A DNA stretch of 64,000 nt from Prasinococcaceae sp. CCMP 1430 (GCA_013416795.1 RQSC01000018.1:131274-195273), one strand, 5' to 3'; positions 18,507-30,328 are shown, numbered from the stretch's first letter. The notes: a model not told the origin generated them from the letters alone. Program-made: numbers and translations.

Positions 18507-19542
18507 TGTGCCAGCCGTGGACGTACGCTGCCCCCGCACCACGCTCGCCCCCCCGGCCCCTCTCCTCGCCCCTTGTCACGCCGCAGCGCTCCCGACCTCG
18601 TGTCGTGGCGCGCACCTCGCCCACTCCGCACCGCGCGCGCGCGAAGAGCGCGCGCAGTGTGGCATGCTGCAGCATCGCCCCCCCACCCCCCCACCCTGCC
18701 TCGCCCCCTGGTCGGGCCCGCCTGCAGCGCAGCAGCGGCGCAGCGCATCCGGTGCTGTTCGGGTTCGGAACCCGCCACAAACAAGCACAATTTCAGTTTG
18801 GGTTGCAGCGCGCACTCGTGAATTTTGGGCCACGTTTTGGTCATGCGATTCGATGGTGTACCATCACGATGGCAGGCTGCAGGAGTGGAAGTTTGCGAGA
18901 CTGGCCCAAATCGCCTTCATTTTGTACTGCAAGACAGACGCGAACCGATCCTGATCCTCATTAGGCGGTGGGGGAAAAAAAAACTTTTTTTCCCGCCACG
19001 GGGCGAAGGCGGTGAGGGGATGGCGGCGGCGGCGAGCGGCGGCGCCTCCCCCTCTTTCCCCCTCCCCCTCGCCCCCTTCCTCCCCCCCGCTCCCGACCAG
19101 GATGGCGAGCGACGGGTAGAGTGGGGGCGGTAGCGAGGGCAGGGGTGGCGGCGGCGCGCCGGGCGCGCGTCGTTGCGCTGCGAGAGCGCCGCGGCCGCCG
19201 CCGGGGGAGGGGGGGGCGGGGCCGTACGTGGCTCAGCGCACCCCGCGCGTTTTTCGCGTGAGCATTTTTCGAACTGCTGGTGGCGATGCGTGCGCGGTGC
19301 AGGGCGGGGCGGAGTTGCGTGCCACACCTGCGCGGGCGCGCGCGGGCGCCGGAGAGGGCGGGGGATGGCGATGGCGTGGACGCCCCGGCGTCCGCGCTTG
19401 CGTACTTGTTGCCGGTGGTGGTGATGAAGATGTCGCCGGTCTCGCCGCACGCGGCTGCCGCGCGGACGGGTGCGCGTGCACGGGCAGGGGAGCGCGCCGT
19501 TCGAAAAGCGCCGAGCGCATCGCGGCAGCGGCGGCGGGCGCG

Positions 19543-22464
19543 ATGCACGTCTTCAAGCCGGCGTGGGTGGCGCATGAGGGGACGCCGATCTTCTCGGTGG
19601 ATCTGTCGTCCGATGGCGCGCGGTGTGCGACCGCGGGCAGCGACCAGAAGATCAAGGTGTGGGCGATGGCACCGATCCGCGACGCGCGCGCCGAGGCCGA
19701 TCCGCAGGGCACGCCCAAGCTCCTCGCGGTGCTCGACTCACACATGGGCAGCGTGAACGTGGTGCGCTGGTCGCACTCGGGGCGCTTCTTGGCCAGCGGC
19801 GCCGACGACAAGTGCTGCCTTGTATACGCACTCCGCCCGGGTGGTGCTGCTGCGCGCTTCGGCGCGGCCGAGGGCGAGGGCGGCATAGAGAACTGGAGGG
19901 TCGTGCGTACTCTGCGCGGCCACGCTGCCGACGTGACCGACCTGGCCTGGGCGCCTGACGACGCGCTGCTGGCGACGTGCTCGGTCGACAACACGGTGCG
20001 CGTGTGGGATGGCGAGGGCGCGCTTGTGGCGACGCTGCAGGGGCACGCCAGCCTGGTGAAGGGCGTGTGCTGGGACCCGATCGGAACGTACCTCGCGACG
20101 CAGAGCGATGACAAGAGCGTGATCGTGTGGAAGACGGAAGATTGGACGCCGGCCAAGAGCATCCGGGGCCGATTCGAGAAGAGCGCCGGCTCGAGCTTCT
20201 TCCGGCGGCTGCACTGGTCGCCTGACGGGGATGCGCTCGTGTGCCCGCACGCCTACCAGCAGCCGTCGCACACAGCGACCGTGCTCGATCGCTCCGACTT
20301 CGAGTCGAAGTTCGACCTGGTCGGGCACAAGCAGCCGGTCGTGGCGGTGCGATTTTCGCCGTCGATTTATACGCGCAAGGGTGCGGAGAGCGCAGGGCAG
20401 CACTTCACGGTCATCGCCGTCGGCTCGAAGGATAACAAGATGACCATCTGGACCACTGGCAAGACCAAGCCGCTGGCCATCGTGCGCGACTGCTTTGAGC
20501 AGAGCATCGTCGACATCAGCTGGGGGCGCAAGGGCGACAGACTCATGGCCGCAAGCCTAGATGGAACCGTCACTTACATCGAGTTCGGCAAGGAGGAACT
20601 CGGAACGCCGCTCGCGGCGGATAAACACGAGGAGTACCTCGCTGAGAAGTATGGCGTCCGCAAGAAGGGGCTGTCCTTCACAGCGTCGCCCGCGCTGGTC
20701 GCGCTTGAGGCAGAGGCCGCCCAAGTCGCGCCCGTGAAGGTCGAAGGCAAGCCCAAGACCAAGCCGAATGCGTCCGCGGGAGAGCAGAAGAAGGCGCCCA
20801 GGCGCATCACGCCGATGGCGGTGGGGAACGGCGCAGCCAACGGCGCGGCCAACGGCGCGGCCAACGGCCCGGCCAACGGCGCGGCCAATGGCGAGGCCAA
20901 CGGCGAGGCCCATGGCGCCGCAAATGGCGCTGGCCTCCCCAATGCCACGGCCACACCCGCCAACGGCTCGTCACCCAAGCCAGCTCCGGCCGCCAAGCCT
21001 GCGCAGCGCGCGCCAAGTGCGGCGGCCATCAGCGCGGCGCTTCGCAGGCAACAGCAGGAGTACCGAGCTCCTGATGGCAAGCGGCGCATCGTGCCTATCC
21101 CCACCGACGGCGGCTCGCAGCCCGGTGTGCCGTTTGACGCGCCGGGGACCGACGCGGGCGGCGGCGGCGCGATGGCTCAACACCAGGCAGCGCGGCAGGT
21201 TATACCGTCACCGAGCCAGACCATGTCTGGAGGCCACATTCACGAGACGCCCGCGGCCAAACGCGTGAAGTACGGCCACGCCGCCGCGCCTGTGCTATTG
21301 GCACCTCCGGTCGCCGATGGTGAGGCCCCCATGGTGCCCTTCCACGTCCCAGAGACTTTGACGGCCGAGTTGAAGGCGATGGCGGAGGCACAGGGGGGGG
21401 TCCCCGGGGAGGCCGCGCTGGTGCTGCACGTCGCGAATCAGCGTGCTGCGCAGAGCGGCCGTTCCGGCAGCTGCGAGGTGCGAGTCACTCGAGGCGCCGA
21501 GGTCCTGTGGAAGGACTCGGTGTCGTCGACGGCCATCTCGGTTGCCGGAAACGCTCGGGTTGCGGCGATCGCGTGCCAGGATGGATCGCTGCACTGCTAC
21601 ACTGCTGCTGGTGGAAGGAGGCTCACCTGCCCGCTCATGCTTGGGGCTCCCGTCACGATGCTTCGTTTCGCGCGCAAGGGCAACGAGCTCACATTGCTCA
21701 CGCTTACCTCGGCCGGCCGCCTGCGAGTGATTGACCTCAAGGCGATGAGGACGACAGCGGACGTGGAGGTGAGCTCGCTCCTCGGGGAGGAGGGCGTCGG
21801 TGTCATCGACGCCTCACTGTCGCGCACGGGCGTGCCCACTATCACGCTTTCCTCCAGGCGCGTATACGCACTGCACGCGGGCGTGGGCTGCTGGCAGCGC
21901 GTGGTAGACGCGCAGGCATTCGAGCATTCCTCGTTTGCGTCTGTTCTGGCGCCCGCGGCGGATGCTGAGGGTGCCGATGCGCGCGAGGTGGGGGCACTGG
22001 AGGCGGGCGCGCGTGGAGGCAAGTCGCCGCAGCTGCGCAGGGCGCTGCTCGGCACCAGCGCAAAGAAGCACCAGGAGGAGACGACCCGCCACCTCGAGAC
22101 GCTCATGGCGGCTGCTCTGTCGATGGACTCGCCCGCCGAGTACAAGGACTGGCTGCGCGCGTACGCCTCGAATCTGGCTGCGGCAGCAGAGGGGGACCGG
22201 TTGAAGGAATTCTGCCAAGAGCTGCTGGGGCCGCCGCATGTTGGCAACGAAGGCGACTCTGACTGGTCGCCGTGGGTGCTGGGCATGCATTCCCGTCACC
22301 TCGTGCGCTTCGTGGTGCTGCCGGCGATGGCGAAGAGCCATGAGATGCAGCGGCTCGTGCTCGAGATAAAGGACGAGGTCGACGAGCTCTACAAGCGGCA
22401 CGGCACGCCGCCCGCGGGGAGGGACCCAGGCGCCGGCGTCACGGCAAGACCGGTGGGGAGCTGA
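19543..22464 (+). CDS. HIRA: Histone chaperone HIRA
   Basis: N-terminal WD40 (KPAWVAHEGTPIFSVD, HMGSVNVVRWS, LRGHAADVTDLAW, GHASLVKGVCWDPIGTYLATQSDD, FFRRLHWSPDG), HIRA-B motif (EYRAPDGKRRIVP), C-terminal HLETLMAAA...EYKDWLRAYA...LKEFCQELLGP. Confidence 0.96.
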   Translation: MHVFKPAWVAHEGTPIFSVDLSSDGARCATAGSDQKIKVWAMAPIRDARAEADPQGTPKLLAVLDSHMGSVNVVRWSHSGRFLASGADDKCCLVYALRPGGAAARFGAAEGEGGIENWRVVRTLRGHAADVTDLAWAPDDALLATCSVDNTVRVWDGEGALVATLQGHASLVKGVCWDPIGTYLATQSDDKSVIVWKTEDWTPAKSIRGRFEKSAGSSFFRRLHWSPDGDALVCPHAYQQPSHTATVLDRSDFESKFDLVGHKQPVVAVRFSPSIYTRKGAESAGQHFTVIAVGSKDNKMTIWTTGKTKPLAIVRDCFEQSIVDISWGRKGDRLMAASLDGTVTYIEFGKEELGTPLAADKHEEYLAEKYGVRKKGLSFTASPALVALEAEAAQVAPVKVEGKPKTKPNASAGEQKKAPRRITPMAVGNGAANGAANGAANGPANGAANGEANGEAHGAANGAGLPNATATPANGSSPKPAPAAKPAQRAPSAAAISAALRRQQQEYRAPDGKRRIVPIPTDGGSQPGVPFDAPGTDAGGGGAMAQHQAARQVIPSPSQTMSGGHIHETPAAKRVKYGHAAAPVLLAPPVADGEAPMVPFHVPETLTAELKAMAEAQGGVPGEAALVLHVANQRAAQSGRSGSCEVRVTRGAEVLWKDSVSSTAISVAGNARVAAIACQDGSLHCYTAAGGRRLTCPLMLGAPVTMLRFARKGNELTLLTLTSAGRLRVIDLKAMRTTADVEVSSLLGEEGVGVIDASLSRTGVPTITLSSRRVYALHAGVGCWQRVVDAQAFEHSSFASVLAPAADAEGADAREVGALEAGARGGKSPQLRRALLGTSAKKHQEETTRHLETLMAAALSMDSPAEYKDWLRAYASNLAAAAEGDRLKEFCQELLGPPHVGNEGDSDWSPWVLGMHSRHLVRFVVLPAMAKSHEMQRLVLEIKDEVDELYKRHGTPPAGRDPGAGVTARPVGS
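20827..20931 (+). repeat. 12-bp coding tandem repeat (AAYGGCGNGGCC)n encoding (NGAA/NGEA)n in the HIRA linker
   Basis: About 9 imperfect units read directly: aac ggc gca gcc aac ggc gcg gcc aac ggc ... Confidence 0.85.
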
Positions 22465-23079
22465 CCCGAGCTTGACCTCGTAAGAGCTCTGTATTCTACT
22501 GCGCAAGGTCTCAGACCCGCGCGACCGGGGACGCTCGCACTTGCCTGCGCGCTCACCACGGGGCGGAGGATAAAAAGGTGCCAGCGCGCTCCATTCCCCA
22601 AAACACGGAACCAACCGTCGACCGCGGCACAAAAGCGCCTTGCATCCGAATGCACACGGACGGGCGCGACGCCGCGAAAGCGAAAGCGGATCTGCGAGCC
22701 CCGCACAAACCGACAAGATCGCGGAGATCTTTCCCGAGGATATTTCGTGTAGGCGCGGACGGGAAAGGACGCACTGTCGAAACGACATACGTATCGGTTT
22801 TCTTTGGTTGGTTCTGACTTATGGCACCTGCGGCGGGCGGGGGTTCTGGGCTGCCCGCAACAACCGTCCTCGCTGGCGCGCGCGACGCTTTCCCCCCGAC
22901 CCCAACCCCCCCACACAGCACGCGTGCGCGCCGCAGCGGGGCGGGGCAGGGAGGGGCCGAGGTGGCGCCGCGGGACGGGGAGGTGGGGCGAGTGGGCGTG
23001 GGACGGTGCGGCCCTGCGCGCGGCCCGGGGTTTGGGTGGGTGGGGGCTCCCGCCGCGGGCGCTTCGGCCGCACGGCGCG

Positions 23080-26000
23080 ATGGCGCCCGGGGCCGCGGCT
23101 GTAACCGCCGCGAAAGCGATGAGCTGGGAGCTGGTGACGGACGTGCCGGCGCCTGCGGCCGGCGGGGGCGGTTGCGGCGGCGAGTCGGTGGTCGCGACGA
23201 TCCCATCGGAGGAAGTGGCGGCCGCCGCAGCCCTCGCGATGTCGGCGTTGGAGAGGGCAGGGCCCCGAGACGGCGAGAGAGACGAGCCTGGCGAGGGCGG
23301 CGCGCCCTCGCCGCCATGCAAGAGGCCGCGCGCGAGAGGCTACTACCGTTCGCCCGCGCTCGGAAGGCTGATGGCCATCGAGTGCGACGCAGAGGCGGTG
23401 CTGGTGGCCGAACGTCGAGAGCGCGACCGCGGGAGGCGTACTGTTTTCGCAGCCGCGCGTCCAGACGGGACAGCATTCGAAGACGTCGACGAGCCAACCG
23501 TTGAGGCCCCCGCGGCCTCGAGCGCACTGAAGCGGAGGGACGCGCGTGACATTGCTAGGCGCCTCGCCGTCGCCGCCCGCAGCCTGCGGCACGCGCAACC
23601 ACCTGCAGACCCACTTAGTAGTGCCGTAGGCGCGGTGCTGCTCACCTCCCCACGCGTCGCGAGGCTCTGCGGTGCCATCGTGCACGTTCCAGGATGGATC
23701 TCGGCGGCGGACGGCGCCACGTTGCTGTGCGCGATCGAGTGCGAGATCAACGCCCACGACGGGTGGCGGCAGGACATGCTCAACATACACGGGCAGAGGT
23801 GGCCTGAGCCGCGCCTAAAGGCATTCTTCGGCTGCAGGAGCTACGTGTACCACGGCGTGACCATGGAGGCGCGCACAATGCCGCCCGTCCTTGCCGCCGT
23901 CACACGCGCGGTGAACACGACCTGCGGCACGAGGCACAACAGCGTGATGGCCACACTCTACCGCAATGGCTCGGATGCCATCAGCTTACACGCGGATGAC
24001 GAGCCCTGCCTGGGAGACAAGACCGAGTCCTCTGTGACCAGCCTCAGCCTGGGAGACTCGCGCGTCTTCGCCATGAGCTCCCACGCGCTCGGCAGCGGCG
24101 CGCCCTGCGTGCGCGTCGAGCTCGCTGGCGGCGATCTGCTGCACATGGGCAAGGGCGTGCAGCACCACTGGAGGCACCGAGTCGACAAGACTGGCTGCAG
24201 GGTCGGTCGGCGGATCTCGCTCACATTTCGCACGATCGTCCACGGTGACATTGGCGTTGGCGGCTCCGGCGAAAGTGATGGCGTGGCAAGGGAAGACAAG
24301 GATGACATCGGCGGCGGTGGTACGTCGGAGGGGGCATGCCGCAGCGACCAGGACTGCCCTGACGTCAGTGCCGATGGGGCTGATAACGACGCGGGTAATG
24401 AAGATGGGGGGCAGATGGCGGAGGTCAGCTCGGCACCCGTGCCACTCCACCTGATGGTGCCGCTGCTGAGCCTGATCTCGCGATGTCAAAGCACAACGCG
24501 TCCGGCGCCCCACCTGCAAAGGGACGCGAGGGAGCACATCGCTGCTGACCCGCACCTGGCAGAGCTCGTGCCACCCTCTGTGCACGCGAGGCTCGGGCTT
24601 CCCCTGCGCCTGCCATCCACGGCACCCTTTGTGCCCCAGACACCGGAGCCCGGCCATTTCGCCTCACCTGCAGCGAGCGGCGCGTCGCCCCCGTCCGCGT
24701 CACCTTCGCAGTCACTGCTCGCAAGCCCCCGTGCAGGTGCCGGAGCTGCAGCTGCATTTCGCGTGGATGCGGCGGGCGCGAGCGCTTTGACTACCAAGCC
24801 GAGGTGCGCGAGCGTTCCTTTGGTTCTGATGGGCGTTCGAAGGCCTACCTATCGCGCGGGGCGCGCGCGCACGAATGTGTACCCGCGTGTGCCCAAGTGT
24901 GGCGAGTGCGCGCACTGCCTGAAGCCCTCGCTCAAGAAGGCGTGTCTCACCAATCGCGAGCTCCTGCGCCAATCGCTGCTGGCGTGTGGCATTAGCCTCG
25001 ACGCGGCACCTGGGGAGGCAGTGGGCGCCGCGGAAAAGATCGTGAACGCGTACAACGCCACTAAGTTCGCAATTGCCGATCCGTCGCAGGTGGTTGAGCT
25101 GCGTAGCTTCCCGCAGAAGAGCGTGCAGGCGCTCTGCAAGGCCGCCGAGGTGCCGGACAAGCCGGCAATTGCAGGTGGCGGGGGCTCGCTGGTGGGGGGC
25201 GCGGGGAGTGGGTACGCCGCAGTTAGTACCATGGCCGGCTGCGTGGATGACCGTGCGGGTGTAGGAGGGGTTGCGCACGGGCCTGGTCTTCACGCTGCTG
25301 ATGGCGCAACAGAAGACGTCAACGAGCACGGAACTTCTGTGCGTGCGCCTGAGCGCCGGCGGCAGTTCTACGCGCCTCCCGACGCTTACTATGGCGACCC
25401 ACCACCGAAGACGGGCGTGCGGGCGGGCGATGTTGTGGCTCTTGCAGACGCGTGGGGTCTCGGTCTGCATCGCTCGATGCGCCGCGGGATGACCGCGCGT
25501 CGATGGGGCCATCCCTCGCAGCCGTGGCCGTGCGAGAGCGTGAAGCTCTGCAGCGGGCAGAAGGACGCATTCAATGTGCGCACGGAGGACGCCAGCGTGG
25601 GCACAGCTGGTGGCGCATCTGGCACGGCTGCGTTGTCGCCAGCAGCGGCTCAGGGTGCGCTTCGCCACTACGTGGGCGACGGCTTCTACCAACGTAGGCC
25701 CAAGGGCATGGATGACGGTTGCCTCACATTTAGTGACGCATCCCTGCTGGCATCGGAGTGCTACGACGTGCCCGTTAGAATGGTGCACCTGCCGAACGGG
25801 GGCACGGGCGGCTGCATCTACGGCGGCCTGTACTGGGTGCGCTGCCATTACTGCCTTTTCGATGGCATGGCCAAAGAGCTGCGCTTCCGACTGACCTTCG
25901 TCTTACAACGTGTGACAGCGGGCAAGGATGCGAGCGTGGCGGCTGCGCGTTGCGAGGCGATCAACGCGAGGCTTCGACCTGTCCAGGAGCTGGAGAGGCG

Positions 26001-26181
26001 GACCGGCCGGCTGGTGCCCGTCGGTGAGGGCATGCGAGAGATACTTGCGAGCGCACGCAGCGAGCGGAGCGCTCCGCCACCGGTTGCTGCGCTCACGCGC
26101 GACATCGCGGTCAAATTTGCGATCGAGAGCGTCGTAGCGAGGACCTTGCTGGCGGTTGGCGAGCTTGCGGGCGAGCAGTGA
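23080..26181 (+). CDS. Multidomain protein: AlkB-family (ALKBH2/3-like) Fe(II)/2OG dioxygenase + mono-CXXC Zn finger + SRA/YDG-like domain
   Basis: AlkB ~23690-24240: EPRLKAFFG..SYVYHG, HNSVMATLYRNGSDAISLHADDEPCLG, SLSLGDSRVF, HGxGVQHHWRHRVDK-like segment, RISLTFR. Cys cluster 24898-24960: CGECAHCLKPSLKKAC. SRA-like ~25380-25915: YYGDPPPKTGVRAGD..GLH..CESVKLCSG..YVGDG..LTFSDASLLAS..VPVRMVH..IYGGLYWV..FVLQR. Confidence 0.8.
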   Translation: MAPGAAAVTAAKAMSWELVTDVPAPAAGGGGCGGESVVATIPSEEVAAAAALAMSALERAGPRDGERDEPGEGGAPSPPCKRPRARGYYRSPALGRLMAIECDAEAVLVAERRERDRGRRTVFAAARPDGTAFEDVDEPTVEAPAASSALKRRDARDIARRLAVAARSLRHAQPPADPLSSAVGAVLLTSPRVARLCGAIVHVPGWISAADGATLLCAIECEINAHDGWRQDMLNIHGQRWPEPRLKAFFGCRSYVYHGVTMEARTMPPVLAAVTRAVNTTCGTRHNSVMATLYRNGSDAISLHADDEPCLGDKTESSVTSLSLGDSRVFAMSSHALGSGAPCVRVELAGGDLLHMGKGVQHHWRHRVDKTGCRVGRRISLTFRTIVHGDIGVGGSGESDGVAREDKDDIGGGGTSEGACRSDQDCPDVSADGADNDAGNEDGGQMAEVSSAPVPLHLMVPLLSLISRCQSTTRPAPHLQRDAREHIAADPHLAELVPPSVHARLGLPLRLPSTAPFVPQTPEPGHFASPAASGASPPSASPSQSLLASPRAGAGAAAAFRVDAAGASALTTKPRCASVPLVLMGVRRPTYRAGRARTNVYPRVPKCGECAHCLKPSLKKACLTNRELLRQSLLACGISLDAAPGEAVGAAEKIVNAYNATKFAIADPSQVVELRSFPQKSVQALCKAAEVPDKPAIAGGGGSLVGGAGSGYAAVSTMAGCVDDRAGVGGVAHGPGLHAADGATEDVNEHGTSVRAPERRRQFYAPPDAYYGDPPPKTGVRAGDVVALADAWGLGLHRSMRRGMTARRWGHPSQPWPCESVKLCSGQKDAFNVRTEDASVGTAGGASGTAALSPAAAQGALRHYVGDGFYQRRPKGMDDGCLTFSDASLLASECYDVPVRMVHLPNGGTGGCIYGGLYWVRCHYCLFDGMAKELRFRLTFVLQRVTAGKDASVAAARCEAINARLRPVQELERRTGRLVPVGEGMREILASARSERSAPPPVAALTRDIAVKFAIESVVARTLLAVGELAGEQ

Positions 26182-26278: not shown

Positions 26279-26850
26279 TTAGAGCTCCTCTTTCTTGTGG
26301 TCGCCATCGCTGGCGCCGGACGCGCCGCCCGCCCACGCGAGCTTGAGCGTCGCCTCCATCGCGTCCGCGATCTGACCCACGTGCGTATAGTAGTACGGAT
26401 AGTTCTTGTTGCCGTCTGTGTTGGTGAGCTCGGGGTGTGGCGTGCCGTCCGCAGACAAGAAGATGACGCGCGGCACGTAATCCGCGCCGCCCGGCTGCAG
26501 TCGTTTGTCCTCGTGCGGCACTCTCGCACTGGCCGGAATTTTGAACAGCACCTGGCTGCGAGTCTTTGCCCGCCCGCCAGCGTCAGCATCGGAGACTGAC
26601 ACCATTGTGAAGCTCCGGCTGAGCGCTGCGAAACGCGCATACTCGGCCTCGTCCTTCTCGAACGTGGCCTTGAGGCTTTTGCACGCGCCGCAGTAGCCAC
26701 GGTGCACGAGCGCCAGAATTGGCTTCTCGCCCACCTCGCTCGTTGCATTCGCGAACGACATCCATTCCACCCCATCACCAGGCACGTTGGACACCCACTC
26801 GTCTCCGCTGTCCTCCGCCGCCACCCCAGCCGCGGCGAGCGCGACGAGCG
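26279..26850 (-). CDS. ER thioredoxin-fold protein, ERp18/TXNDC12-like (N-terminal signal peptide/start not resolved)
   Basis: VEWMSF..KPILALVHRGYCGACKSLK, FTMVSV, PGGADYVPRVIFLSADGTPHPELTNTDGNKNYPYYY, and C-terminal ER-retention-like KEEL. Confidence 0.85.
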
Positions 26851-27432
26851 TCCGGCGCCCCGTTTGGCGCGCCCCTTCGCGCGCGCTCGCGCAGAGCGCC
26901 CGCGGCCGCGCCCACGCGCTGCCATCCACGTCATCCACGCCATCGCTGCTGCGACGCCGCGGTCGGACGCCGACGCTTCCCGCCCACCCGCGCGTGCCAC
27001 CCGCAGTGCGTGCAGTGTGGCGTCGCCGCGCTCCCGCCGCCCGCGATGACCATGTCAACAGCCAGACCAGAGTTCAACAGACTGACCTGAACAGCCAAGA
27101 GGCACGAGCCACCAGGCAAACACCCAATGTCGAGTCGCGTGCAGAAGGTGCATCCTCATTGACATCATATGTAGCCACGGGCGATTACAAGGGGTCTATG
27201 TGTCACACACATTGCCAGCTGGCATATGGCGAATGTGCGCGCTCATGCGCGTGCGCCATGTGGCCAGTGCGCCCGAGAGGACGCGCTGCGTGGGTGCGCT
27301 CCACGCTCGCGACCACGAGCAGCAGCGCTCGCATGAACACCCAACTCAACTGCACCAAAGCGTTCTGTTACGAGCGTAGCTGCCCACCTCGAGGCCTTGT
27401 ATGTATACAGCAGAGTACAACACGTGGGCCGC

Positions 27433-28798
27433 CTATTCGACAGACACGAATCCCCCCGAACCGGCCACGCGCGCCTTGTCTCGGACCAGGTCGTGGTGCC
27501 AGACGAGCGGCGGCGTCTCGCTCGCCGTGTCGGACAGCTTGACGCTTACGCTGTCCACCGGCACGTGGACCTCATACTCATAGGCATTGCCGTCGGCAGC
27601 CATCACCACAAGCCGCACGGCAGCGGCCTTGCGCTCGCTTTGGGCGTGCCACTCGGGCACGCCGAAGGAGCCGTCGGGCCACGTCAGGGCGCACAGCTTC
27701 GGAACGCGCCCGGACGGCAGCCGCACGATGACTGCCGCTGCAGGGGGCTCCACAGCGTCCACCAGCCGCTCGGGCACCACACCTGCCGAAGCGGCTGCGG
27801 TGAGAGCACCGCGTGCCCATCTCCGCAGCTTCGCAGCTGCGGCACCGGCAGCGGCCGCTGGGCCGTCGCCACCATCGTCCTGAATACGACTGGCGCTCAC
27901 ACCACCCTCCGCTCTTCTGGCCTCGCCAGCTCCGGGGTCCATGCGAAATACGTGCACTGAGCCTGAGTCAGAGGTCGCAGCCAACAGCCGCGTACCGCCC
28001 GCCTCCGGAGCGGGCGAGAAGGCGAGTGCGCACACCATGGCTGGCTGTCGTCCACGCCGGAAGGAGGCGACGCGCTGAGCCGTGCGAACGTCAAAGACGC
28101 GCACGATGGTGCCCTTCGAACTCGCCGTCGCCAGCAGCGCAGCCGACGCGTCTGGTGCGAACGCGAGCGCCGACACCCGCGACTTGTGCGCGTGCACCTC
28201 GCCGAGCACCTCGAGCCGTTCAGTGTCATAGAGCAGCACGGCCCCAGGTCGTGCGTCGGCAGCCGGTAGCGCGAGCACGCCGGTGTCGCTAATCGCGCAG
28301 AGTCCATCCGCGTCGCACGCACACGGCACGCGCGCGAGCTCCGCCTGGGTCTCGAGCGAGTACACGCGCGCCTCGCCAGGAGTGAGCGCGACCACTGCGG
28401 TGCGTGTCAGCCTTACGGCGGTCACCCTTGCTCCCACGCGCATGGCCACCACGCCCTCGGGGTCACTTTCGGCCGCTGCAGCGTCGCGAAGCACGAGTGT
28501 GCGCGGCGAAGGTCCCTCGACGCCCTCGGCGTCGCGCCCTCCGGCCCCTACATGCGCGAGAAGGTTTGTGGGCGGCAGGCACTCAGCGACGCTCACTGCT
28601 CCGCCCTCGAACACGAAGCGCGGCCGCGGCGGGGCCGCGGCGCTACGCCCGCGGAGCAGCGCGCGGCGCGCGTGCACCGCGAACCGCGAAGCCGCGCGCG
28701 CCGCGCGCAATGAGCAGCGACGCGTCGGGCGCCAGGGCCAGCGCCGCGGGCGAGTCCACGCCACCGCCCAGCGCGCCTCCGCCCGCCCCCCGGCCCAT
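27433..28798 (-). CDS. ATG18: Autophagy PROPPIN ATG18/WIPI; frameshifted in this assembly near 28677-28690
   Basis: WD40 propeller with AHKSRVSALAF, LLATASSKGTIVRVF, FRRG phosphoinositide-binding motif and ATSDSGSVHVF. The N-terminal blade (APDASLLIARGARGFAV) is in a different frame. Confidence 0.88.
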
Positions 28799-29248
28799 GC
28801 TTCCAGGCGCCGCGCGCGCTCTGCCACGCGTGCGAATTCTGTCTTTTCGTACATCTGCTCGCGCGCGCGCATCCAAAAAAGCGCACTGCCGCGCTCGCAC
28901 GCGCCAGAGCGTGTGGGAGCATCGGGCTCTTCATGGCGGCGCTCACATCCCGAGAGGAGAGCAATGAGGCAGTTGAGAACACCGTTCTCGCCAGCAACAG
29001 CGACGGGGACAGCGCTGCTGAGTGCGACGCCCTCAGCAGCGACGTGGAGTCCCACGACGGCGAGGAAGAGCTCGCCGGGGATGGCGACGCCGGACCGCTC
29101 AATTGCCATCTGCAAGTGGGCGAGCAGCGCATGGTGCGTGGGCGCAGGCACGCGCGCTCGCGCTGAGGGACACTGCGTGTAATACAAAGAAGGTGTAAAT
29201 AGTGCCGCAGGTGCATCACACGCGCGCGGTGAGCTCGCGCGCTCTGAT

Positions 29249-30328
29249 TCACCAGTTGTCGTCCGACGGCTTCCCGTCGAGCTGGGGCTTGGCGGCGAGG
29301 ACCTGCACTTTGCCGCCAGCGGCGATCTCGAGTACCTGCGGCGTGCCACTGAAGATGCCCCTACTCATGCCCACGTCGATGCGCCACACGCGCCCGTCAC
29401 ACGAAGCATTTGCGCCGCCTTCCTGCGGCGTGTGCCCCACCACCATTCGCTTCGCCCCGGTCGCCTCGAGCACGCTGCTCAGGTCGTTGCAGACGGACTC
29501 GTTGCTGGCACGGCCGTACACGCGCGTCCAGTACACGCCACCGTCGCCGTTGATGACCTGGCCCGGGAGCTTCCCGACGCCGCTCATCCACGCCGCCATG
29601 TCATAGTTTACTTTTTCGAGTCCGTACGCCACGTGCTGCGGGAGGACGCCCGCGTGCGCGAAGAGCGTGTCGTCGATCTGTAGCACCGTCGGGTTGGTCG
29701 CGAGCGCCATCGCGAGCGGACCGCCCGGCGCGAACAGGGCGAAGCGCGCCTCGGCTGCGGCGGTGAGCGTCCAGGGATCGCCCTCGGGGCGCGGACCCTG
29801 CGTCTCCTCGATGTACATTGCCGTCTCGCGGAACCCTCCCAGCGTCACATAGCGGAAGTCCCCCATTACGTTCATCGCCTCGTGGTTGCCGTGCAGCATG
29901 AACACGTCGCCGCCAGCTTCCTGCGCCTCCTCGCGCAGCGACGCGAACAGGCCGAGGAGGCGCAGCTCATCATCGCCACGGTCAAGAATGTCGCCGACCT
30001 GAACGAGGAGCGTGTCACCGCCCGTCCACTTTGGCATCTCGGTCATCACGACGCCAGTCCCCTGTTCGGCGCCCGCGCTCGCCACAGCTGCGTCCGCGTC
30101 CTCCTGAGAGACCACGCCCGCCAGCGCTAGCGCGCGCAGCGCCTGCGCCCAGTCGCCGTGCATATCTCCGATGGCGACGGCGCGGCGGCCTCGCGACTCG
30201 ACGTGCAGAGGAGGCGTCGCGACGGGCAGCGGAGTCGGCTCTGGCGGCGCCTTCGCCGCCGCCGCAGGGTCAACGTCCTGGAACGCCGCCGCCGCGCACG
30301 CCAGCAGGCCGCCGCGGCGAGTCGCCAT
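29249..30328 (-). CDS. SLP1: Shewanella-like protein phosphatase (SLP1-like, PPP family); start may lie in the upstream gap
   Basis: AIGDMHGD, VQVGDILDRG, HGNHEAMNVMGDFRYVT, LFAHAGVLP, WTRVYG, RMVVGHTPQ, WRIDVGMSRG. Confidence 0.9.
   Translation of the reverse strand: MATRRGGLLACAAAAFQDVDPAAAAKAPPEPTPLPVATPPLHVESRGRRAVAIGDMHGDWAQALRALALAGVVSQEDADAAVASAGAEQGTGVVMTEMPKWTGGDTLLVQVGDILDRGDDELRLLGLFASLREEAQEAGGDVFMLHGNHEAMNVMGDFRYVTLGGFRETAMYIEETQGPRPEGDPWTLTAAAEARFALFAPGGPLAMALATNPTVLQIDDTLFAHAGVLPQHVAYGLEKVNYDMAAWMSGVGKLPGQVINGDGGVYWTRVYGRASNESVCNDLSSVLEATGAKRMVVGHTPQEGGANASCDGRVWRIDVGMSRGIFSGTPQVLEIAAGGKVQVLAAKPQLDGKPSDDNW

Follow-up and report, generated by a model that had tools for sequence, protein, structure and literature searches.

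Does a single algal gene join an AlkB-type dioxygenase to a base-flipping SRA domain, and what might such a protein do? The question is raised by a 64,000-nucleotide (nt) stretch of the genome of Prasinococcaceae sp. CCMP 1430 (GCA_013416795.1, RQSC01000018.1:131274-195273), here called the window, in which one long open reading frame (ORF) carries motifs of both families. Our analysis confirmed that a single gene encodes a catalytic domain of ALKBH2/3 type (ALKBH3 being the nearest), a conserved four-cysteine unit and a genuine SRA-superfamily domain. With moderate confidence, we read its product from the sequence as an ALKBH3-type dealkylase that a zinc knuckle and a base-flipping SRA domain would tether to chromosomal DNA. 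It would repair 3-methylcytosine (3mC), 1-methyladenine (1mA) and related lesions, with by-products of DNA methyltransferases (DNMTs) as the likeliest steady source.

A three-module protein encoded by one gene

The coding sequence lies in a single plus-strand ORF (22804-26181 in the ORF listing), which from its first ATG, at 23080, encodes 1033 amino acids (aa) and a stop codon without interruption (Table 1). It corresponds to PRCOL_00000148 of Prasinoderma coloniale: the protein was 97-100% identical to the eukprot entry PRCOL_00000148-RA (P0002, 935 aa) and to environmental variants (cluster P0001). Most of these variants are exactly 1033 aa long, and more than ten retain the full ORF. An ortholog from a sister lineage (P0003), an 836-aa single ORF on 9-kb contigs with 69% G+C, was 45-52% identical overall and carried the same module order in one reading frame. 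The window has ~67% G+C and many long ORFs in other frames, several of 300 aa, so ORF length alone is weak evidence for a gene.

Conservation was compared along the protein. Identity to the ortholog was 50-83% over the AlkB region (aa 181-390), 67% over the four-Cys unit (aa 601-630) and 53-80% over the SRA region (aa 781-960, insert excluded). In the gap-rich linkers it was 7-37%, and 13-30% in those adjoining the four-Cys unit. The near-identical environmental variants had 1.5 variable sites per 100 aa in AlkB, none in the four-Cys unit and 1.2 in the SRA halves, as compared to 5-12 in the linkers. The G+C content at third codon positions (GC3), a coding signal in this genome (0.83 in the neighbouring HIRA gene), was 0.86 for AlkB, 0.84 for the four-Cys unit and 0.77 for SRA, and the signal was absent from some linkers. 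That all three modules are under selection, in one frame and in two species, is the main argument for a true fusion protein.

The AlkB module matched Pfam 2OG-FeII_Oxy_2 (PF13532) over aa 201-384, with an E-value of 6.2e-18 and 66.2 bits against a cut-off of 31.2, covering profile positions 3-194 of 194. A phmmer search of the PDB sequences at E<=0.01 returned only human ALKBH3 (7e-20, ~185 residues) and ALKBH2 (~3e-14). The iron ligands are H304 and D306 (LHADDE) and H366 (WRHRV), with the counterparts WHSDDE and WQHRV in ALKBH3. The 2-oxoglutarate (2OG)-binding R378 and R384 lie in RISLTFR, aligned with RVNLTFR of ALKBH3, and Y294 lies in LYRNGSD. The motif NSVMATLYRNGSD aligns on NSLLCNLYRNEKD of ALKBH3. 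The initial annotation had described an intact AlkB catalytic set close to ALKBH2/3; all the motifs it quoted were present and aligned residue for residue with human ALKBH3. The catalytic machinery is intact and of ALKBH3 type.

The HxD...H iron triad, the RxxxxxR 2OG motif and an NS..LYRN..D block are common to the window protein and human ALKBH3 and ALKBH2. The chemistry of ALKBH3, oxidative N-methyl removal from 1mA and 3mC, would be expected here as well. The surroundings of the domain differ. Human ALKBH3 is a stand-alone catalytic domain (less than 300 aa in full length, 232-250 residues in the solved constructs), whereas the window protein has a 186-aa N-terminal extension and a C-terminal extension of ~650 aa with the zinc unit and the SRA domain.

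The four-Cys unit (C607, C610, C613 and C622; CGECAHCLKPSLKKAC, aa 607-622) is the protein's sole C-x2-C-x2-C-x(6-10)-C; from the Cys content, 0.0007 would be expected. All four Cys, H612, P616, K619 and the subsequent TNR are kept in the ortholog. In the language-model atlas, the neighbours of a 49-aa fragment were zf-CXXC clusters, with weak scores of 0.56-0.61. Among PDB chains at E<=10, phmmer with the unit as query matched none of the CXXC type. Its best local match was to class III alcohol dehydrogenase, at the structural zinc site (PQCGECKFCLNPKTNLC, E 0.16), and the other matches were zinc ribbons of ribosomal protein L34 only. The zf-CXXC domain (PF02008) is binuclear and has eight Cys, whereas the four Cys found here imply one metal site. 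The unit probably forms a single Zn(Cys)4 knuckle, similar in shape to one unit of a CXXC finger. Of the CXXC finger proposed initially, the conserved four-Cys unit stood, and its identity as zf-CXXC was not supported, with neither a Pfam nor a PDB zf-CXXC match. The accompanying proposal of CpG reading is weakened likewise, since no zf-CXXC model matched and the sole pointer is the language-model neighbourhood, weak at 0.61; such reading is possible. The literature searched did not contain the term 'mono-CXXC'.

For the SRA domain, the ortholog was more informative than the window copy. The latter stayed below the Pfam SAD_SRA (PF02182) cut-off (14.4-15.8 bits vs 30.7, model positions 57-125 only), because a 22-residue insert splits the profile match in two. 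The ortholog, 61-70% identical over the domain, exceeded it (32.7 bits vs 30.7, E 7.3e-8, aa 599-738, model positions 2-137 of 148). As this margin was narrow, independent support was sought. The top PDB match of the ortholog domain by phmmer was the SRA-HNH endonuclease TagI (PDB 6ghs, E 0.015, 125 residues), and 40 of the 100 nearest ESM-atlas clusters were SAD_SRA (top score 0.93, 191-192 shared features). Further, 18 true bacterial SRA ORFs were gathered by a degenerate RYDGLYKV DNA pattern and used for a hidden Markov model, for hhalign and for a multiple sequence alignment (MSA). The model gave 23.1 bits on residues 598-747 of the ortholog. With hhalign, the profile of the two Prasinoderma sequences, the window protein and the ortholog (alignment A2), matched the 18 TagI-type domains with 96.9% probability (E 1.3e-10, 139 columns). 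The same profile gave no SRA match among PDB sequences at E<=10, and PADLOC and NCBIfam gave none either.

AlphaFold2 (AF2) modelling from the two-sequence MSA reached a predicted local distance difference test (pLDDT) score of 28. With SRA sequences added, the pLDDT was 48 and the predicted TM-score 0.48, and only the C-terminal half was at pLDDT 50-77. The top 50 PDB matches of this low-confidence model by Foldseek were all SRA (TM-scores 0.3-0.5), as were its atlas neighbours and most of its named AFDB-cluster neighbours. The matches included SUVH5, SUVH6, KRYPTONITE (KYP), MspJI, TagI, ScoMcrA, UHRF1 and UHRF2. Since the MSA was itself made of SRA domains, this result shows consistency and is not an independent test. 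There is good support for homology of aa 757-945 with the SRA superfamily: the SRA-like motif order that had been noted for this segment is borne out by the Pfam match of the ortholog and by the hhalign match to bacterial SRA domains.

By the Pfam match of the ortholog, the domain shares the fold family of UHRF1 and SUVH proteins, and it has their order of motifs as well (G.P.G, GxH, GG-x-x-D, Y-x-G-x-G, VR, Y-x-G-L-Y). It differs from them in its partner, which is a dioxygenase and not a SET or RING domain, in the 22-residue insert, and in reading YGG for YDG. The TagI-type SRA-HNH modification-dependent endonucleases are the closest solved relatives by sequence and likewise join a base-flipping sensor to a DNA-acting enzyme, which is a nuclease in TagI and would be a repair dioxygenase here.

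The pattern scan also recovered the TagI gene itself, in Thermocrispum agreste DSM 44070 (L024, 3263-4279, minus strand). The 17 other bacterial SRA ORFs came from Nocardioides, Mycobacterium, Streptomyces, Pontibacter, Prochlorococcus and others; the one in a Prochlorococcus single-cell contig (L028) was unexpected.

The published gene model, PRCOL_00000148-RA, removes two in-frame segments of the ORF as introns, 24457-24711 (255 nt, GT..AG) and 24805-24843 (39 nt). Inside the first, VPLLS, H486, D490, P491, L493 and E495 are shared with the ortholog, and this conservation suggests that it is coding; the second is implausibly short for an intron. Both introns look over-predicted, and we think that the two stretches are probably coding. 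The spliced model still holds all three modules in one protein. Another in-frame GT..AG candidate, of 57 nt (25597-25653), overlaps the insert in the SRA domain. The insert could be a loop, or else belong to a very small intron in frame. As all these introns are in frame, the architecture is unchanged whichever of them holds. Among RNA libraries, a seawater metatranscriptome (X2) had near-identical contigs over 23741-23891 (AlkB part) and 25875-26063 (SRA part), and an RNA-labelled library (X1) had a contig over 25807-26067. One further run (X6) was evidently DNA, not RNA. The short RNA-library contigs on the gene contained no splice junctions, and none of them crossed the SRA insert.

For four variants (P0001, P0023, P0025 and P0027), N-terminal extensions of 30-109 residues were called, owing to an upstream ATG where the window has CTG or TTG. 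Strains may differ in their true start, or it may be 23080 throughout.

The base pocket of the SRA domain

In TagI and UHRF1, the flipped 5-methylcytosine (5mC) lies between two Tyr (Y55 and Y67 in TagI, Y466 and Y478 in UHRF1). An Asp (D58 in TagI, D469 in UHRF1) bonds the cytosine at its Watson-Crick edge, which gives the cytosine preference and sterically excludes purines (PMC6212794). In three separate alignments, the SRA block GGYxDD aligned with SGQKDA in the window protein and with GGQKDA in the ortholog, and residue counting on the TagI alignment reproduced the published TagI numbering. The pocket-equivalent positions are Q827, D829, A830 and Y864. Where TagI keeps Tyr55, Asp58 and Tyr67 (PMC6212794), the window protein has Q827 for the first Tyr and A830 for the Asp, and keeps the second Tyr alone, which is Y864 within HYVGDG. 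All 18 bacterial SRA domains have the Tyr and the Asp, whose conservation is at least 90% over the 20 rows of the alignment. At the YDG motif, the window protein has YGG (IYGGLY) and the ortholog YRG.

The canonical 5mC pocket, with two aromatic walls and a carboxylate, is absent from both proteins. The suggestion that the SRA domain reads 5mC fails at this residue level (Q827, A830), and with neither the first Tyr nor the cytosine-reading Asp in the pocket we do not claim it. The altered pocket echoes Iyer, Zhang and Aravind (BioEssays 2016, PMC4738411), who describe the AlkB-fused SAD/SRA domains of fungi as divergent and suggest a ligand other than 5mC.

What could such a pocket hold? The changes from Asp to Ala and from Tyr to Gln would remove contacts to cytosine N3 and N4 and widen the pocket, so that an adducted cytosine could fit. 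The SRA domain might then be a lesion sensor rather than a 5mC reader, accepting N3- or N4-adducted cytosine or 5mC, such as 3mC, 3-methyl-5mC or etheno-5mC; we regard this as quite doubtful. Etheno-5mC is repaired by ALKBH2 and ALKBH3 (PMC11551763). If the sensor existed, the SRA domain would flip a damaged base out of the duplex and hand it to the tethered ALKBH3-type domain, which alone prefers single strands. The protein would then find, flip and repair by itself the damage that is peculiar to methylated DNA, and might contribute to the reported lack of 5mC-associated hypermutation in P. coloniale.

Proposed function and its alternatives

Human ALKBH3 stands alone and prefers single strands. 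One nuclear gene here would give a modular repair or demethylation enzyme, in which the catalytic module is an ALKBH3-clade Fe(II)/2OG dioxygenase. This module would hydroxylate N-methyl groups of bases, canonically those of 3mC and 1mA, and the methyl would leave as formaldehyde. On the same chain, the zinc knuckle and the divergent SRA domain, whose fold clamps duplexes and flips bases, would hold the dioxygenase on chromosomal DNA and open access to lesions in the duplex.

The likely source of lesions is suggested by the methylation of the genome. P. coloniale has 14% 5mC and 25% methylated CpG (5mCG), five PF00145 genes and a DNMT5 candidate, as well as a very low rate of mutation, without hypermutability of 5mC (PMC11884799). 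DNMTs form 3mC in a side reaction, which explains the co-evolution of DNMT1 and DNMT3 with ALKB2; 3mC is repaired by ALKB2/3 (PMC9246332). In a genome with ~25% CpG methylation and several DNMTs, the likeliest source would be 3mC from the DNMT side reaction, in addition to other alkyl damage. That the target is DNA and not RNA is our inference, as are the substrate, the connection with DNMT by-products and the ligand of the SRA pocket.

Several points weigh against a DNA-tethered ALKBH3-type dealkylase. ALKBH3 also acts on RNA, so an RNA target is possible. The SRA pocket is non-canonical, with both changes in both orthologs, and the module may recognise a different ligand, or none at all; the variant SRA of the nuclease HHPV4I is reported to be inactive (PMC10101028). 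No Pfam match at E<=10 was obtained for fragments of the four-Cys unit (47 and 81 aa, window and ortholog). The RNA evidence is thin, consisting of short contigs from libraries that possibly contain DNA, none of which spans domains. Finally, in protein and metagenome searches the family was confined to two Prasinoderma-like lineages, so phylogenetic co-occurrence with DNMTs is not assessable.

The protein might instead erase N6-methyladenine (m6A) from DNA or RNA, with the remodelled SRA pocket recognising methylated adenine and the AlkB module removing the N6-methyl group. We hold this to be unlikely, though it has several points in its favour. Iyer, Zhang and Aravind propose the same for the fungal proteins with divergent SAD/SRA and AlkB, and suggest AlkBH3-clade fusions as possible DNA m6A demethylases (PMC4738411). 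The purine-excluding Asp of TagI (PMC6212794) is Ala here, and the nearest named atlas clusters of the whole ortholog were long Ascomycota AlkB proteins (score 0.85). However, ALKBH3 and ALKBH2, with 1mA and 3mC as established substrates, are the nearest to the catalytic domain, and the m6A erasers ALKBH5, FTO and ALKBH4 were not among the PDB matches at E<=0.01. Among the marks reported in P. coloniale, where m6A was also surveyed, 5mC and 5mCG predominate (PMC11884799). The SRA variant of the m6A-dependent enzyme HHPV4I plays no part in m6A recognition, and with its reported inactivity it was rejected as a precedent for an m6A-reading SRA domain (PMC10101028).

An RNA demethylase, acting on 1-methyladenine or 3-methylcytosine in tRNA or mRNA, with the C-terminal modules as RNA- or protein-binding adaptors, seems very improbable. 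Human ALKBH3 does demethylate RNA as well as single-stranded DNA, and the PUA-like superfamily, which includes SRA, has RNA-binding members (PMC4738411). Yet the C-terminal domain is closest to TagI-type SRA domains, which flip bases of duplex DNA, and the basic patch near the N-terminus, resembling a nuclear localisation signal, is conserved.

Still less credit is given to a TET-like 5mC eraser, in which the SRA domain and the zinc unit would target methylated CpG, and 5mC would be oxidised to 5-hydroxymethylcytosine, 5-formylcytosine and 5-carboxylcytosine. The genome is CpG-methylated (PMC11884799). Oxidation of 5mC by ALKBH2, ALKBH3 and E. coli AlkB is reported in PMC6582317, as an in vitro reaction. 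By analogy, a Cys unit together with a 2OG dioxygenase would resemble TET1 and TET3: like these and other CXXC-bearing chromatin enzymes, the window protein has a CGxCxxC...K(K/Q)xC..R unit beside a 2OG dioxygenase. Unlike them, it has four Cys, no KFGG-type loop and a plain AlkB catalytic domain in place of a TET/JBP-type domain. The canonical 5mC-holding residues are also absent from the SRA pocket. Oxidation of 5mC by ALKBH2, ALKBH3 or AlkB is not known to have an in vivo role.

That the ORF is a GC-rich artefact, with the AlkB and SRA parts in separate genes or in exons of different transcripts, is extremely improbable: GC-rich DNA does yield long spurious ORFs, the published model removes two in-frame segments, some linkers lack the GC3 signal and no RNA contig bridges the domains, but the same module order is found in one frame in a species only 45-52% identical, more than ten environmental variants retain the full ORF, and the spliced model keeps the three modules in one protein.

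AlkB-SRA fusions bear on two wider questions: how DNA-methylating cells handle alkylation damage made by their own methyltransferases, and whether an SRA domain can be readjusted to recognise marks or lesions that are not 5mC. P. coloniale is cultured and sequenced, and its CpG methylation has been measured (PMC11884799). Each of the three modules is short and has clear limits, which makes for straightforward in vitro tests, and a clear substrate and binding preference would settle the function of the whole fusion class. Should the protein prove to repair 3mC and 1mA in the ordinary way, with a generic tether to DNA, it would be a modest addition to the AlkB family.

Precedents, relatives and genomic neighbourhood

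The initial annotation did not recognise the three-domain green-algal architecture; the AlkB and SAD/SRA pair itself is not new. Fusions of AlkBH3 to SAD/SRA and other DNA-binding domains, as well as a divergent SAD/SRA fused to AlkB in fungi, were recorded computationally by Iyer, Zhang and Aravind (PMC4738411). As there described, the predicted fusions resemble the window protein in having an AlkB-family dioxygenase and a divergent SAD/SRA domain with features against plain 5mC reading. The likeness is by description only, and the available part of the text makes no mention of a four-Cys unit. An architecture with the Cys unit may already be depicted in a figure or supplement of that paper. 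AlkB-SRA fusions have been predicted since ~2015, and no experimentally tested one was found in the literature.

What appears to be new is the Prasinodermophyta lineage, the conserved four-Cys unit between the domains and the explicit pocket substitutions, together with the isolation of the family, which appears to have no relatives beyond two lineages in ~5.8 billion proteins. A word-indexed search of this set with the C-terminal half, the AlkB region and the SRA region of the ortholog as queries found only the protein's own cluster and one sister cluster. Exhaustive phmmer with the last 289 aa of the protein as query, against 1.84 billion representatives, gave nothing beyond these two, and JGI metagenome scans with two alignments (A2 and A1) found no relatives.

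Three stretches outside the modules have conserved residues. In the basic patch, a possible nuclear localisation signal, C80, K81, R82, R84, Y89 and R90 are invariant with respect to the ortholog, whose patch is CKRRRRTSSYR. In the linker motif, V454, P455, L456, V460, P461, L462, L463 and S464 are unchanged. The C-terminal tail had no family match and has conserved patches at A951..R977 and L1005..A1025.

Table 1 Positions of the gene, its parts and the neighbouring genes, counted from the first nucleotide of the window.
Feature	Position	Strand	Residues	Evidence or remarks
HIRA histone chaperone, upstream neighbour (context only)	19228..22464	+		Pfam CAF1B/HIR1 beta-propeller 5e-59, Hira 1e-29
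Whole coding sequence	23080..26181	+	1033 aa + stop	Corresponds to PRCOL_00000148, Prasinoderma coloniale
Basic patch CKRPRARGYYR	23317..23349	+	80-90	In low-complexity N-terminal region
AlkB-type Fe(II)/2OG dioxygenase	23638..24234	+	187-385	Pfam, PDB phmmer, motifs
Linker motif VPLHLMVPLLS	24439..24471	+	454-464	Spans 5' end of annotated intron 24457-24711
Conserved four-Cys island, C607-x2-C610-x2-C613-x8-C622 then LTNR	24874..24969	+	599-630	67% identity to the ortholog
Divergent SAD/SRA (YDG) domain	25348..25914	+	757-945	Pfam match of the ortholog, hhalign, PDB phmmer
Gly/Ala-rich insert within SRA, 22 residues	25600..25665	+	841-862	Gap in the ortholog; GC3 0.50
C-terminal tail	25915..26178	+	946-1033	33-53% identity to the ortholog
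Convergent downstream ORF	26279-27058	-		Weak Thioredoxin_7 match, 20 bits, below cut-off; CGAC motif
PROPPIN (Atg18/WIPI-type) beta-propeller ORF	27433-29349	-		Pfam E 3e-14; FRRG motif; long low-complexity N-terminal extension

The initial annotation had placed the gene directly downstream of HIRA. HIRA does lie immediately upstream on the same strand in the window, but this adjacency is not conserved in the contigs of the sister species: reciprocal tblastn of HIRA and the thioredoxin-like neighbour against the two ortholog contigs (L001 and L002) revealed no shared neighbours. There, two ORFs that carry no annotation lie upstream of the gene, and downstream of it is a Rab3-GAP catalytic subunit. 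The HIRA neighbourhood is probably incidental for this reason, and HIRA was rejected as a functional partner.

On the downstream side, 97 nt separate the stop codon of the AlkB-SRA gene from the 3' end of the convergent ORF. The HIRA ORF as listed begins at a GTG, 105 codons before the first residues that match the HIR1 beta-propeller, and its likely start is the ATG at 19543. The Arg/Gly/Ala-rich stretch before it (19228-19542, plus strand) is probably the HIRA 5' untranslated region, read through in a GC-rich frame.

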